Shown piece after piece: positions 2,233 through 10,616 of a stretch of 64,000 nucleotides of DNA (positions are counted from its first letter, which is position 1; the number at the start of each line of letters is the position of its first letter). Where the stretch lies: the sequence record OR538032.1; one strand, written 5' to 3'. The position numbers were made by a program, and so were the translations under genes. The notes under the pieces are model-generated. The model saw nothing but the letters and a program-made list of their open reading frames with translations, did not search any database and had not been told where the DNA came from.

Positions 2233-2259
2233 TGTTCTAGAAACGTAACATAATCCCTA

Positions 2260-2310
2260 AAAAGCCCCGTTAATGTACTCATTCAGTAACATTATCACGG
2301 GGCTTTTTTG
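2260..2310 (+). terminator. rho-independent terminator with extended stem
   Basis: AAAAGCCCCGT-TAATGT...ACATTA-TC-ACGGGGC-TTTTTT. Confidence 0.8.
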
Positions 2311-2317
2311 TGTCTGT

Positions 2318-2346: not shown

Positions 2347-3465
2347 ATGAAAAATCTAAAATCTTTTATGGAAGAACTTCAATCATTGAACGAAGTCTTC
2401 ATTCGTGGCGGTCGACCACGAAACGGGTCTAAGGTTCTTGCGAACGGCAAGAACATTTGGGTATGGAATAGCGATAGAGAGTTCGAACGCCTAGCGCCAT
2501 TTATCAATCGCGAACTCGGAACCGACTTTGAAGAAGAGTACGATCTAGACTCTTGGTACGAAGAGGGCGCACAAGCGGTATACGCGACGATTGAAAACGG
2601 CAAGCTAGATATGCAAGGGCAATCATCTTATCGCCCGTCTGTAGCGTCTGACACGCTTCGCAAGACTATTAAAGCCCTTAACCTGAACGGCGTGACTCGT
2701 CGAACGCAATCATTTAACCCTGATTACGATGAAGTTGAGCACGATTTCGAGACCGACCGTCGAGAATTCAACAAGAAACTGTCTCAGAAGACGTTCTATC
2801 ACGGTACATCGACAACGTTCATCGAATCAATGTTGAAATTTGGTCTGAAACCGAATCCGAATGAAACTCAATTCGATAATATTGAACATGCTGATAAAGT
2901 CTTTATTACAACAGAACTTGACAAAGCAATGTTCCACGCGACACACTCAGCGAACCGAAACAACTCGTTCCCTGTGATTATCGAGCTACGCATTCCAGAC
3001 GAAAGCAAGCTTGTATCTGACTATGACGTTGTAATTGATGTTCTGGGCGCTAATTCAGAAGAAGCATCCGAGCTTGGGTATGCTGACATCTTCTATCAAA
3101 TGCCACATTCGCGTGGTGACGGTACGAAGTATCACCGAGACGACATCGAAAGTCGATTTGGTAAACGTCTAGGCGGATTGAGTACTCGCATCGGTATCTT
3201 CGGGTACAAAGGTCGAATCCCTGCAAGTCATTTCAATTTCATCTACGCTGACGGTGACGTGATCGAAGAGTCAATGCCAGAAATGTATTGGGAAATGGAC
3301 GGCGAATTCGACATGGCAGAAATGCGTACTGAATCAGTCAACCATCGTTCGTTCGACTACTGGGATCAATTCAAACCCACTAAATTCATTGCTCACTTCG
3401 AAGAACTTTGGGATGATCTCAAAGATGAATACGAAGACGAGGAAGAAGACGAAGATTGGGACTAA
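2347..3465 (+). CDS. ADP-ribosyltransferase-fold (Tpt1/PARP-like) protein with capsid-targeting-like N-terminus
   Basis: FYHGTS...KFGLKP, VFITT...A, PVIIELRIP motifs; N-terminus MKNLKSFMEELQSLNE; acidic tail. Confidence 0.6.
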   Translation: MKNLKSFMEELQSLNEVFIRGGRPRNGSKVLANGKNIWVWNSDREFERLAPFINRELGTDFEEEYDLDSWYEEGAQAVYATIENGKLDMQGQSSYRPSVASDTLRKTIKALNLNGVTRRTQSFNPDYDEVEHDFETDRREFNKKLSQKTFYHGTSTTFIESMLKFGLKPNPNETQFDNIEHADKVFITTELDKAMFHATHSANRNNSFPVIIELRIPDESKLVSDYDVVIDVLGANSEEASELGYADIFYQMPHSRGDGTKYHRDDIESRFGKRLGGLSTRIGIFGYKGRIPASHFNFIYADGDVIEESMPEMYWEMDGEFDMAEMRTESVNHRSFDYWDQFKPTKFIAHFEELWDDLKDEYEDEEEDEDWD

Positions 3466-3470
3466 ATACT

Positions 3471-3497
3471 AGGGAGCAATAACGCTCCCTTTTTTTA
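3471..3497 (+). terminator. rho-independent terminator
   Basis: AGGGAGC-AATAAC-GCTCCCT-TTTTTT. Confidence 0.8.
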
Positions 3498-3507
3498 GGA
3501 CTGAATC

Positions 3508-3993
3508 ATGTATAAATGTAAACATTTCAAAATCCAAGAGCTTGTAACTCCACAAATGCACGCTGCATGGGGTGAAAGATGTTGGTCACTTTTCGACGAC
3601 CGTCTATTACGCACGCTAGACGCGCTCAGAGAACGTTTCGGTCCCTGCACCATAAACGATTGGAGTTGGGGCGGATCGTTCAAATACAGCGGTTTCAGAG
3701 ACGAAAACTTCTACGGATCGACACAAAAGTACCTTGATAGCCGTTCTCAGCACAAATACGGTCGTGCAGCCGACTGCAAATTCAGAAATCACACCGCAGA
3801 TCAAGTGCGTAAATACATCTTAGAGAACCCAGAAGAATTCCCTTATGTGAAATTCATTGAATGTAGCCCGCTTGCAAACGGAACATCTATGTCATGGGTT
3901 CACATCGACGTACGTAACAGCGAAGATGTTCAATGTTGGTCTCCAAAAGAAGGCTTTATTGATGCTGGCGAAGTAATCCGCAGAAAACTTTAG
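3508..3993 (+). CDS. peptidase M15-family endolysin
   Basis: SQHKYGRAAD and WVHIDVR Zn-binding motifs. Confidence 0.85.
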   Translation: MYKCKHFKIQELVTPQMHAAWGERCWSLFDDRLLRTLDALRERFGPCTINDWSWGGSFKYSGFRDENFYGSTQKYLDSRSQHKYGRAADCKFRNHTADQVRKYILENPEEFPYVKFIECSPLANGTSMSWVHIDVRNSEDVQCWSPKEGFIDAGEVIRRKL

Positions 3994-7310: not shown

Positions 7311-7318
7311 TATTTATA
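7311..7318 (-). promoter_or_regulatory. T4 late promoter
   Basis: TATAAATA overlapping the upstream fibre stop codon. Confidence 0.75.
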
Positions 7319-10300
7319 AACGAAGCAACTTCTTCCACCATGGGCGTTTAAGCTCGTGTACTTCGTTCTGAAGCGTGTCTACTTTTGCATTAAGCTCTTT
7401 GATAGCTTCAATCAAAAGACCGTTCATATTGCCGTACGCGACTGATAGAATACGTTCTTCGTCGTCACTTTCCACCACTGCTTCTGGCAGTACTTTTTCC
7501 ACTTCTTGCGCAATCACACCCGTCTCACGAATATATTCGTCAGAATCGAATGAACTACGCTTGTCATATGTATACCCGTTTAATTCACCTACTTTATTGA
7601 GTGCATTATCAATAAGCTTGATGTTTTTCTTCAAACGTCGGTCTGAGTACGCTGTCACGTTACCCGGAGCAGTGAAGTTACCAGTTGAATACTGGAATGA
7701 CCATTGCTTAGTCGTTGAGCTATTCAGCGACGAAACGATCTGAGCCGTATGCGCGCCAGAAGAACTCAAAATAGCACCGAATGAGTGCTGATAACGACCA
7801 CCCGAGTGGTTAATATCACCTTTCATAAAAGCATGATATTCACTAGTACCCGAACTTGATTTGTAGTGATAAAATGGAGCTTGTGACGTGTAATGCGAAG
7901 CATATGCATAAGATGCCGCAGATCCGTAAGCCGTCATCCTACCCGTAGACAACAATGCACTTTGAACTGTTACATCAGTAAAGTCATTCCCATAGTTGAC
8001 AATCAAGTTTGACGTTGTACCTACTAATGCTCGCTTATCACGAATCTTGAAATCTTGACCGCCATTTGAGCTAATCAAAGAAGACCCGAGATAGGTTGCT
8101 GTGGTAGCAGTCGTAGCCGATGTCGCCGTCGTAGCGTTGCCACTCAGAGAACCCACGAATGTCGGCGCTGTTACACTATGCGCAAACACCGCAGTTCCGT
8201 TTTCGTTCAACCTGAAATCATCAGATGCACTACCGTTGTATCTAAACGCCATGACGCCGTTTTGATGGTCAAGCTGCCAGTAGTTATCGCTGTACGTACT
8301 GTCCATCAAGTTCAACTGAACGTTTGTGTGTCGAATCGTCAACTGTCCATTGATCGTATCCCCTGCTTTGCTAACCGCACCAATTTCAGCCAATGACCAT
8401 GCAACGTTAGCAGATCCGTTTACTGATTTGCCAGTATTACCGATTGTCAATGTACGAGCATTAGCCCACGTCGTCGCTGTACTTGCATTCCCACTCAGTG
8501 GGCCTACAAAGCTACCACTCATAGTCCCGCCGATAACTGATATATTACCAGACGAATTGCAGTCTAGGCGAATGTCATAATCAGCCGTGCTATTAGTCGT
8601 GTGGAAATCAATATATCTCGCAACTTCAAGCACACCAGCAGATGTAACTTTTGCTAGGTATTTGTTAACAATCCCTGCGAATGTTTGAGTTGTCGAGAAC
8701 TCGGAATTTTGTGCAAATCGAGCATCGGATTCAGATTCAGTGTAGTACCGACCATCGTGAGTATGAGAGTCATTTGCCACAGTAACTGTCATTGTCGCAT
8801 TTGAGCTACCGTCAAACGAAACTGCGCCACTTACATCGCCGTTTAGCGTCAGCGTACGAGCAGTAGTCCATTTGTCAGCATTTGGATGATAACCGTCATG
8901 AAACACATTGTTGCTTCCGTATTTCAAAACCCCATCAACTGAAGACAATACCCCGTCAATACCCCAGAAATTTGAGTGATAGTTGCCGCCCGTATTGACA
9001 AACTCATGGTAAACTTCAACAGTATAGTTCGATGTGTGCCATGTCGAAACAGCAGGATCGCCATCTACATCAATGAAGAAATTGATTCTATTACTACTTG
9101 CCGCAGATTGAGTAGTATTAACAACCGTCCATGCACCGTTGATATTAGTGAATGTCGCGCTAGATGCCGAGTCAGTAGTTCCAGTGCCCGTAATTACAGC
9201 TCGTACACGGATAGAACCTTGCGTAATCGCAGCCCCATTTTGGTCTAACAACTTAGCAGGAGCATTGATGTTTACTGCATAGTCTCGGCGATACTTGTAC
9301 ATCCCTCCGTAGAAATCACCCGTGATCTCTTTAGCTGTCCATGTTACATTACTCGTACCATCTACTGACTTACCAGTGTTACCGATTGTCAACGTCCTTG
9401 CAGTTGTCCATTTATCAGCATTCGGGTGATAAGCATCGTGAAACACACGTTGGTTTACTTTCGCGAAAATCTCACCTTCAACTTCAAGACCAGCAGGTGA
9501 AGCAACACCGCCATTCTGACGCAGAATCAATGCCTGACCATTACCACCAGCCGTGTTAATATCACCGTCAGTGATCTCGTGAATTAGCTCAAGGTTTTGA
9601 CCAGCACCTGTAATCCAGTTGATACCTGAATTGTTGTTTGCGTAATCAGTTTCATTGAAACTCAAACGCCCAGATGCTTTGCTGATTGCCACGTTACCAG
9701 TGAATGTGTCACCTGCCACGTTTGCAAATCGAGCATCAGATTCAGTCTCAGTGTAGTAACGCCCGTCGTGTGTATGTGAATCGTTCGCTACAGTAGCTGT
9801 AACGGTCACAGTTGCATTAGCCGACCCATCTATAGTCATAGACGCAGAACCGCTCACATCGCCCGTTAGAGTCGTTGTTAGAGTGCGTGCAGTTGTCCAC
9901 TTATCAGCATTTGGGTGATAGGCGTCGTGAAACACATTGTTATCTTTGTACTTGATCGCAGTTGTATTAACAACAAACCCACTTGCAGTCGCTGAACCGA
10001 CTTGCAACGTACCATCAGTACGAACTAGAGACGAGCCGAAGTATACGCCAGATGTAAATGCAGCTTGGTCATTGATTCTCAACCATGTATCGAACCCGCG
10101 AATTGCAGTTTTCGCGTTGATGTCAATGTTCTCAATGCCGAAGTTTGCTGCCGTTGCATCAATACGAAATCGAGTTGTCGCTGTATCATTTTCACGTAAA
10201 CTAAAATTGCCACCGTCGTTGATCAAATACCAACGTTTTGTACCGTCATTATCTTGAAGCAACAAACGAGGCGAAGCACCACGAATTTCAATTTCATTCG

Positions 10301-10571
10301 CCGTGTTTGTCAGTTTACCCGTCATCGTATCGCCGATCTTTTGAACGTAGCCACCGCCCGCAATCGGGGCAAATCGAGCATCAGATTCAGCTTTTGTAAA
10401 TGCAGAAGTCGTCCCACCGTTACCTAGTTCGCCTGGCAGTGGTGTGTCGTGTTCTGTGTAAATTTTGTAGCCTTGGTAGCGGATAGTCTCGCCTTGCGGG
10501 TCAAAGCGAAGATTTCCCCCGTGCCAGACTATATTACCACCAATTGCGGTAGTTGATCTTAGTTCTGCCAT
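7314..10571 (-). CDS. 37: long tail fibre distal subunit (gp37-like) with S74 intramolecular chaperone
   Basis: repeated YHPNADKWTTARTL and DSHTHDGRYYTE modules; YSDRRLKKNI...GYTY...GVIAQEV C-terminus. Confidence 0.85.
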   Translation of the reverse strand: MAELRSTTAIGGNIVWHGGNLRFDPQGETIRYQGYKIYTEHDTPLPGELGNGGTTSAFTKAESDARFAPIAGGGYVQKIGDTMTGKLTNTANEIEIRGASPRLLLQDNDGTKRWYLINDGGNFSLRENDTATTRFRIDATAANFGIENIDINAKTAIRGFDTWLRINDQAAFTSGVYFGSSLVRTDGTLQVGSATASGFVVNTTAIKYKDNNVFHDAYHPNADKWTTARTLTTTLTGDVSGSASMTIDGSANATVTVTATVANDSHTHDGRYYTETESDARFANVAGDTFTGNVAISKASGRLSFNETDYANNNSGINWITGAGQNLELIHEITDGDINTAGGNGQALILRQNGGVASPAGLEVEGEIFAKVNQRVFHDAYHPNADKWTTARTLTIGNTGKSVDGTSNVTWTAKEITGDFYGGMYKYRRDYAVNINAPAKLLDQNGAAITQGSIRVRAVITGTGTTDSASSATFTNINGAWTVVNTTQSAASSNRINFFIDVDGDPAVSTWHTSNYTVEVYHEFVNTGGNYHSNFWGIDGVLSSVDGVLKYGSNNVFHDGYHPNADKWTTARTLTLNGDVSGAVSFDGSSNATMTVTVANDSHTHDGRYYTESESDARFAQNSEFSTTQTFAGIVNKYLAKVTSAGVLEVARYIDFHTTNSTADYDIRLDCNSSGNISVIGGTMSGSFVGPLSGNASTATTWANARTLTIGNTGKSVNGSANVAWSLAEIGAVSKAGDTINGQLTIRHTNVQLNLMDSTYSDNYWQLDHQNGVMAFRYNGSASDDFRLNENGTAVFAHSVTAPTFVGSLSGNATTATSATTATTATYLGSSLISSNGGQDFKIRDKRALVGTTSNLIVNYGNDFTDVTVQSALLSTGRMTAYGSAASYAYASHYTSQAPFYHYKSSSGTSEYHAFMKGDINHSGGRYQHSFGAILSSSGAHTAQIVSSLNSSTTKQWSFQYSTGNFTAPGNVTAYSDRRLKKNIKLIDNALNKVGELNGYTYDKRSSFDSDEYIRETGVIAQEVEKVLPEAVVESDDEERILSVAYGNMNGLLIEAIKELNAKVDTLQNEVHELKRPWWKKLLRL

Positions 10572-10616
10572 GTTATTCTCTCATTGAGTACGTTTATCAT
10601 GTATTTATGAAGATAC

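Follow-up and report, generated by a model that had tools for sequence, protein, structure and literature searches.

A putative late, leader-tagged ADP-ribosyltransferase without detectable relation to Alt in KVP40-like vibriophages

The locus and its gene

The window analysed here is a stretch of 64,000 nucleotides from sequence record OR538032.1, in which an intact open reading frame (ORF) of 372 codons, beginning with ATG, occupies positions 2347-3465 of the plus strand. Across this part the window is 98.5% identical to the DNA of Vibrio phage KVP40 (base 1 of the window being KVP40 base 153727), and the 372-residue product is the counterpart of KVP40.0290 (NP_899537.1, "hypothetical protein"), with 100% identity over the aligned residues 1-351. 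Here, I report that this protein is predicted, with a clear result in modelling, to have an ADP-ribosyltransferase (ART) fold, that it represents a separate family of such enzymes, and that its gene combines a putative late promoter with an N-terminus resembling the leaders by which phage T4 sorts proteins into its head.

Orthologues of KVP40.0290 are found in 51 records of Vibrio schizo-T4 phages and in Salicola phage SCTP-2. In one of these records the protein was automatically named "poly(ADP-ribose) polymerase catalytic domain protein"; among the others listed it is hypothetical, except in one record, which is unannotated. In phage 6E351A the orthologue is VP6E351A_0357, a protein of 371 residues assigned to phrog_11974 and core in 18 of 18 genomes. 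A PHROGs search places KVP40.0290 in the same group, whose function is given as unknown, a PADLOC search of the 372-residue protein gave no match, and no experimental study of the family was found in the literature searched.

The gene, all of whose parts lie on the plus strand, is preceded by a Shine-Dalgarno sequence, GAGGA, read directly at 2338-2342, 4 nucleotides 5' of the ATG. A capsid-targeting-like leader (residues 1-16, 2347-2394) would be followed by a family-specific alpha/beta N-terminal domain with conserved S101 and K106 (residues 17-140, 2395-2766), by the ART core (residues 141-302, 2767-3252), delimited by fold searches and conservation, and by C-terminal helices ending in a poly-Asp/Glu tail (residues 303-372, 3253-3462), recognised by composition and isoelectric point (pI). 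The whole protein is acidic (pI 4.67). Its tail, residues 353-372, holds 14 Asp or Glu among 20 residues and closes on an aromatic residue, and such an acidic tail with a terminal aromatic residue recurs throughout the family.

An ADP-ribosyltransferase fold in a separate family

A Tpt1/PARP-like ART fold had been proposed in the first-pass annotation from three motifs, all of which are present (YHGT at residues 151-154, GL at 166-167 and VFIT at 185-188). The AlphaFold model, for which 23 homologues served as input, does have this fold: it reached a predicted local distance difference test score (pLDDT) of 83.9 and a predicted template modelling score (pTM) of 0.84, residues 1-16 being modelled at low confidence. 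When the model was submitted to the VIA fold search, the best match was TkoKptA (Z 10.9, root-mean-square deviation 2.2 over 86 residues), further matches being Arr (Z 9.0), TreX (Z 9.0), mouse Tpt1 (Z 8.7) and pertussis S1 (Z 8.0). Nearly all of the top 40 matches were ARTs, and PltA, LT, Scabin, DarT and PARPs appeared at lower rank. Along similar lines, Foldseek returned pertussis S1, PltA, cholera A1, Tpt1 and DarT, with probabilities of 0.99-1.0 for the top ARTs. The N-terminal domain, when modelled alone, reached a pLDDT of 85.8, and no convincing match to it was found among solved structures (best Foldseek E 0.15, best VIA Z 4.2).

The fold is clear in the model and weak in the PARP and Tpt1 profile matches. 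The Pfam PARP model (PF00644) aligns with residues 129-225 over profile positions 30-127, at 22 bits and E 1.3e-4; the gathering cut-off is 26.7 bits, and no Pfam family reaches its own. A search of PDB with the family profile gave Tpt1 chains as the sole significant matches, in the region YHGT...GL.P (E 0.003). The corresponding single-sequence search retrieved only a chance match, an NADH dehydrogenase subunit, and in a protein-feature search an Arr cluster was among the weak neighbours.

With the family profile, a search of 1.84 billion representatives found 1369 clusters at E<=1e-3, 348 of them at E<=1e-30, and most of the 1369 share the same full-length architecture. The members come from phage and viral contigs only. 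No relative emerged when 185,579 species genomes of prokaryotes were scanned; as that scan used one narrow peptide pattern, the "phage-only" status is provisional. Among 101 members compared with Pfam, PARP was matched weakly in 14 (E<=0.01), Tpt1 in 12 and DarT in one, with no meaningful match outside the ART clan; two large fusion proteins exceed the Pfam PARP cut-off. Since the matches of the members are weak and confined to the ART clan, the KVP40.0290 family is a separate, unnamed family of H-type (PARP/Tpt1/Arr-like, not Alt-like) ARTs. Membership of Tpt1/KptA proper (PF01885, NF002013) was considered and rejected, since a PF01885 search of the whole KVP40 record came back empty at E<=10 and the NCBIfam score was 13 bits against a cut-off of 231.

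One could still ask whether the protein acts as an RNA 2'-phosphotransferase of the Tpt1/KptA type, taking part in tRNA repair together with phage RNA ligases and polynucleotide kinase. That Tpt1-type enzymes provide both the best structural match and the only significant PDB sequence match would agree with such a role, as would the fact that KVP40 encodes RnlA, RnlB and PseT. However, a late promoter and a capsid leader (see below) do not suit a repair enzyme, which would be needed early, and no solved fold, including those of Tpt1 chains, was matched by the N-terminal domain. The N-terminal lobe of Tpt1 carries catalytic Arg and His residues. A role in tRNA repair is accordingly regarded as highly improbable.

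Conservation and the active site

Conservation was assessed in 142 family representatives, each taken from a different 50%-identity cluster. H152, G153, D225, D227 and Y287 are invariant in this sample, and T154, G166, F186 and G289 are conserved in 99% (F186 being replaced by Tyr in two of the 142). H197 is found in 98%, and E16, to which I return below, falls within the set conserved in 98-100%. As E16, H152, G153, T154, G166, F186 and H197 all belong to that set, the motifs from which the fold had been proposed are beyond chance.

The signature of the NAD site is present, with the beta-1 His in H152-G-T and the beta-2 aromatic residue in F186, which hhalign aligns with the canonical Tyr of ART-PolyVal (GIYFT). 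The core further comprises H197, D225-x-D227 and Y287-x-G-R, and contains an insert of roughly 56 residues at 228-283. At the position of the canonical beta-5 catalytic Glu, motif comparison apparently places a glycine, Gly283, which is itself kept in 96% of the relatives; catalysis would therefore depend on D225 and D227. The invariant D-x-D, following beta-4, would be the likely catalytic element.

The same glycine might be taken to mean that the fold is catalytically dead, so that the protein would be packaged in a structural or internal role, or would act as a sponge that binds NAD+ or signals derived from ADP-ribose. The missing acidic residue at beta-5, the sub-threshold Pfam score and the recurrent fusions to NUDIX domains, which point to the handling of ADP-ribose or NAD metabolites, would be in keeping with this. 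Yet D225, D227, Y287, R290 (88%) and K106 of the N-terminal domain (96%) are conserved outside the core of the NAD pocket among relatives that are 20-40% identical, a pattern typical of an active site. Moreover, Tpt1 and Arr lack the canonical Glu and are nevertheless active, which also counts against an inactive enzyme. Loss of catalysis thus appears unlikely.

A putative late transcription unit

The gene forms a unit of its own between two intrinsic terminators. Upstream, a long hairpin followed by a U-run at 2259-2312 (plus strand; -23.6 kcal/mol, z -6.8 against shuffled sequences) ends an early-type operon, with the 3' arm and the T-run conserved across five phages. Downstream, a terminator scan located a second hairpin with a U-run after it at 3471-3496 (plus strand; -12.7 kcal/mol, z -3.8). 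Directly 3' of the upstream terminator, at 2318-2325 of the plus strand and 21 nucleotides 5' of the ATG, lies CATAAATA, a late-promoter-like element that departs from the gp55 consensus of T4, TATAAATA. A scan of this strand for sigma-70-like promoters found none.

In the KVP40 genome, 13 of 13 occurrences of TATAAATA and 53 of 91 occurrences of xxTAAATA lie at most 66 nucleotides upstream of an ORF, the genes downstream of such elements including gp23, gp22, gp18, gp24, gp25 and wac. The variant CATAAATA also precedes the KVP40 Alt-like gene and a tail-fibre gene. Neither the terminator nor TAAATA varies in the orthologous spacers of phages VH7D, nt-1, K571 and 1.081.O, in which the flanking bases differ, and xxTAAATA stands close upstream of the gene in distant homologues as well (L010, L011, L012, L028, L033, L035 and L036). 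Position -13 of KVP40-type late promoters is known to be loosely conserved (PMC1524935). One homologue, P0012, is encoded within a structural operon, among genes for neck, gp15, terminase and sheath. The literature searched yielded no KVP40 transcriptome.

That virion genes encoded in the same genome use CATAAATA, and that the element is conserved before the orthologues, bear out its earlier reading as a late promoter variant, and a late, gp55-type promoter for the KVP40.0290 gene is supported by these comparisons of sequence. As a side product, octamers of TATAAATA together with T(A/C)TAAATA and CATAAATA variants, found before most KVP40 structural genes, provide a usable map of putative late promoters for this phage group.

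A leader resembling those of the T4 internal proteins

The protein begins MKNLKSF...LNE, residues 5-16 being KSFMEELQSLNE. In T4, the propeptides of the internal proteins (IPs), 10-19 residues long, direct these proteins to the core of the prohead; positions 4 and 7 of the leader are important for targeting, and positions 8 and 10 for gp21 cleavage (PMC9026906). In the T4 record, IPII and IPIII start with MKTYQEFIAE and IPI with MKTFKEF...ITE. The resemblance to a T4 capsid-targeting and gp21-cleavage sequence that had been noted for this N-terminus holds, both in its match to the leaders of IPI, IPII and IPIII and in its end at the tripeptide LNE, since the KVP40 gp23 site which aligns with the T4 cleavage between Glu65 and Ala66 reads G-L-N-E|A. 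The leader of KVP40.0290, ending in L-N-E at residue 16, is thus predicted to carry a prohead protease site.

In the 142 relatives, the peptide ahead of the conserved domain is 4-56 residues long, the lengths having one mode at 9 and another at 14-16, and its end is strongly constrained: P3 is Leu, Ile, Val or Met in 96%, P1 is Glu in 99% and P1' is Met, Leu or Val in 96%. The homologue P0010 starts with MKKFQDFLAE, near-identical to the T4 10-mer, and this peptide ends at the family-invariant Glu. Within KVP40, the strict form of the leader pattern occurs in two of 464 ORFs, namely KVP40.0290 and KVP40.0066, and KVP40.0097 has a looser version.

In some relatives the leader heads runs of unrelated consecutive genes, five in L008 and seven in L012, the latter run including two ART-PolyVal proteins. 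Being shared by unrelated neighbouring genes, the leader behaves as would be expected of a portable capsid-loading tag. On their own account, these runs in metagenomic phages (L012:5391-12173 and L008:5985-9614) look like arsenals of internal proteins or effectors.

Detection of the orthologue in virion preparations

A preprint on Schizotequatrovirus (bioRxiv 10.1101/2024.12.24.630238) describes mass spectrometry of 6E351A particles precipitated with polyethylene glycol (PEG), in which 94 of 444 proteins were detected. The orthologues of all three leader-bearing KVP40 proteins are among the 94: VP6E351A_0357, counterpart of KVP40.0290, with 18 and 4 spectra in replicates 1 and 2, VP6E351A_0103, counterpart of KVP40.0066, with 31 and 79, and VP6E351A_0134, counterpart of KVP40.0097, with 58 and 109. 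The Alt-like VP6E351A_0095, counterpart of KVP40.0059, gave 122 and 233 spectra; it ranks among the more abundant virion proteins and exceeds the KVP40.0290 orthologue about 16 times.

When scaled to the portal protein, VP6E351A_0357 would be present at about one copy per virion, a level in the range of the probable contaminants NadV and dUTPase, and its count dropped in the replicate in which the structural proteins rose. Because of this contaminant-like level and this drop between replicates, the virion detection lends weak support to packaging. Of the proposal that the protein is carried in the virion, then, one part stands, in that an orthologue was detected in phage particles, and the other does not stand firmly, the counts being low, inconsistent and contaminant-like.

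The spectra might instead reflect carry-over, KVP40.0290 being a late enzyme that works unpackaged in the cytoplasm of the producing cell, with LNE as the structural start of the first beta-strand. This reading would accommodate counts that are low, shift between replicates and do not exceed those of other, evidently non-structural enzymes found in the same PEG-precipitated material. It would likewise accommodate the presence of [LI]-x-E at internal domain junctions of relatives, as well as the acidity of the protein, which is unlike the T4 internal proteins. It would not, however, explain the T4-like leader with its near-identical 10-mer in P0010, the leaders of the same type in arrays of unrelated neighbouring genes, or the homologue (P0012) encoded inside a head-tail operon. 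Fusion to ART-PolyVal speaks against it too: Pfam named this domain after the polyvalent proteins, which are predicted to be injected (PMC9503650). On balance, an unpackaged enzyme is thus somewhat unlikely.

Two further proteins deserve mention here in their own right. KVP40.0066 (L003:39187-39834, starting MKQFCNFLAE) and KVP40.0097 (L004:8233-9687, starting MKLFTEFYQE) have T4-like leaders, and both are candidates for internal proteins of the head. Virions of 6E351A clearly contain the two orthologues.

Fusions and effector context

In several relatives the family domain is part of a larger protein of polyvalent type. It stands behind ART-PolyVal in P0126 and behind three copies of ART-PolyVal in L034, a protein of 1160 residues with a leader-like N-terminus, and at least four large proteins (P0106, P0122, L029 with 1868 residues, and L030/L031) have it beside NUDIX. 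An attempt to derive the class of substrate from the NUDIX fusion partners gave no assignment. In these fusion proteins [LI]-x-E is retained at internal domain positions; the invariant Glu could therefore be structural, or a processing site between domains.

Independently of KVP40.0290, the jumbo-phage contigs concerned encode multi-domain proteins of 1064-1868 residues (L029:381-5987, L034:2316-5798 and L030:3621-6815), and the [LI]-x-E motifs at the domain junctions of these giant ART fusion proteins may be sites of protease processing.

Iyer et al. argue that packaging in the head and injection are frequent among the ARTs and Nudix proteins of myoviruses, and predict the polyvalent proteins to be embedded in the virion and injected; in the text consulted, the family of KVP40.0290 is not discussed by name (PMC9503650). 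The KVP40-type genome also encodes NAD+ salvage (NadV and NatV), a sirtuin and a macro-domain protein.

Proposed function and target

The fold, the promoter and the leader together support the suggestion of the first-pass annotation that the protein could be an injected enzyme different from Alt. In its fuller form, the explanation I favour, at a probability of roughly 60%, is that KVP40.0290 is a late, leader-tagged, protease-processed ART of low copy number in the head, injected to modify the host beside Alt. I infer its packaging, cleavage, injection, catalysis and target along the following steps. Late in infection, a gp55-type promoter of the gene's own would drive its transcription as a single-gene unit, bounded on either side by a terminator. 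The 16-residue leader would carry the protein into the prohead core, as the leaders of the T4 internal proteins do, and a gp21-type prohead protease would cut after Leu-Asn-Glu16, leaving an enzyme of 41.5 kDa at low copy in the head. At the next infection this enzyme would enter the cell with the DNA and, alongside the Alt-like enzyme, mono-ADP-ribosylate a conserved host target at the expense of host NAD+, the phage genes for NAD+ salvage possibly keeping that substrate available.

Several of the findings above weigh against this explanation: the Pfam PARP score that stays below its cut-off, the glycine at the apparent position of the catalytic Glu, the acidity of a protein whose presumed T4 analogues are basic, the [LI]-x-E motifs kept inside fusion proteins and, from the virion proteomics, the estimate of about one copy, the contaminant-like level and the fall in the second replicate.

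With regard to the target, about half of the weight may be given to a protein, about three tenths to nucleic acid and about a fifth to a small molecule. The structural neighbours Tpt1, Arr and DarT modify non-protein acceptors; on the other hand, the strong negative charge of KVP40.0290 argues for a basic protein target over nucleic acid. A bolder version, which I consider rather unlikely, would have an injected enzyme with Tpt1-like chemistry, lacking the catalytic Glu, ADP-ribosylate a phosphate or base of nucleic acid, for instance to cap the ends of the phage DNA as it enters or to disable RNA of the host; in that case the D-x-D would be a new catalytic or metal-binding element, and the ART-NUDIX polyproteins of jumbo phages would be cut by the prohead protease at their [LI]-x-E junctions.

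For decades T4 Alt has been the sole virion-carried phage ADP-ribosyltransferase known to have been studied. The family described here may represent a second class of ART, unrelated to Alt and bearing the same packaging signals, in a large phage-only family of T4-like and jumbo phages. It occurs in KVP40, a cultivable model phage which also makes its own NAD+. If the favoured explanation is true, this phage would offer a system for a new injected activity, be it of host takeover or of anti-defence. It would also test the T4 capsid-targeting leader as a general and portable loading tag well beyond the T-even phages, and would define an ART whose active site is built with D-x-D in place of the canonical Glu.

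Neighbouring genes

The next gene, at 3508-3993 of the plus strand, is the equivalent of KVP40.0291 and encodes an endolysin-like M15/LAS peptidase of 161 residues (phrog_894, E 1e-33, with weak matches to Pfam Peptidase_M15). An element ACTAAATA overlaps the stop codon of the ART gene ahead of it, and the 6E351A orthologue of the peptidase gave 2 and 0 virion spectra. The peptidase gene was rejected as a functional partner, the two genes being linked only in close relatives (KVP40-like phages and L018).

Further along the window, a tail-fibre-like ORF of 1085 residues with internal repeats occupies 7314-10571 of the minus strand, with CATAAATA upstream of it at 10602-10609 of the same strand. 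In the related schizo-T4-like contig L018, which shares synteny with KVP40 in the region of the ART gene, a Tad2-like protein (a family of anti-Thoeris sponges) is encoded about 9 kb downstream (L018:14996-15256).

Comparison with known systems

The closest functional parallel is T4 Alt, likewise an ART-fold enzyme. The T4 alt gene has the layout of the KVP40.0290 gene, a hairpin followed by TATAAATA and the gene, and Alt, too, starts with a short propeptide that ends in [LI]-x-E (MELITE in T4); the proposed carriage of KVP40.0290 in the head and its action at the start of the next infection would extend the likeness. The two proteins differ in size (372 residues against 682 in Alt) and in signature, as KVP40.0290 has the H-G-T of the H-type and Alt belongs to the R-S-E type of ARTs. 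BLASTP against T4 Alt gave an E of 10, and hhalign against the KVP40 Alt-like protein a probability of 0.05%; without a detectable sequence relation to Alt, membership of the Alt/Mod group (R-S-E, phrog_802) was rejected. KVP40 has an Alt homologue elsewhere, the unannotated KVP40.0059 (L003:32600-34264, minus strand; phrog_802, E 1e-88), which is preceded by a CATAAATA promoter and starts with a leader whose last residues are L-T-E. The earlier suggestion of an enzyme different from Alt is hence supported, both by the failure of these comparisons to find a sequence relation and by the separate Alt-like gene of the phage.

To IPI, IPII and IPIII, which are internal proteins of T4, the likeness resides in the leader, M-K-x-hydrophobic-x-x-F...[LI]-x-E, which has 10-19 residues in T4 and 16 in KVP40.0290. 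As at the IP loci of T-even phages, the leader is common to unrelated neighbouring genes in relatives of KVP40.0290. The T4 internal proteins are small and basic, of about 8-20 kDa (PMC9026906), whereas KVP40.0290 is an acidic protein of 43 kDa.

Among the H-type enzymes, Tpt1/KptA provides the closest structure for the NAD-binding lobe; YHGT...GL.P is common to both, and both probably lack a Glu at the canonical beta-5 position. KVP40.0290 differs in its N-terminal lobe, in its D-x-D and Y-x-G-R motifs and in the 56-residue insert. Arr is a minimal H-type ART, and the spacing of His, aromatic residue and Asp at 152, 186 and 225 would be similar to that in the H-Y-D of Arr. KVP40.0290 is set apart from Arr by its extra N- and C-terminal domains and its phage context, and the Arr-ms model of Pfam found no sequence match in KVP40.0290 or the relatives searched. 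ART-PolyVal, finally, belongs to the same superfamily (hhalign E 3.9e-4 across the H, Y and H motifs) and is fused or adjacent to the KVP40.0290 family in P0126, L034 and L012. KVP40.0290 has no PF18760 match, and the canonical Glu-containing beta-5 motif, by inspection, is kept in ART-PolyVal and absent from the KVP40.0290 family.

To conclude, a head-packaged phage ART is already known in Alt and has been predicted more widely; what is new here is another clade of ARTs, with its own N-terminal domain and its D-x-D signature.

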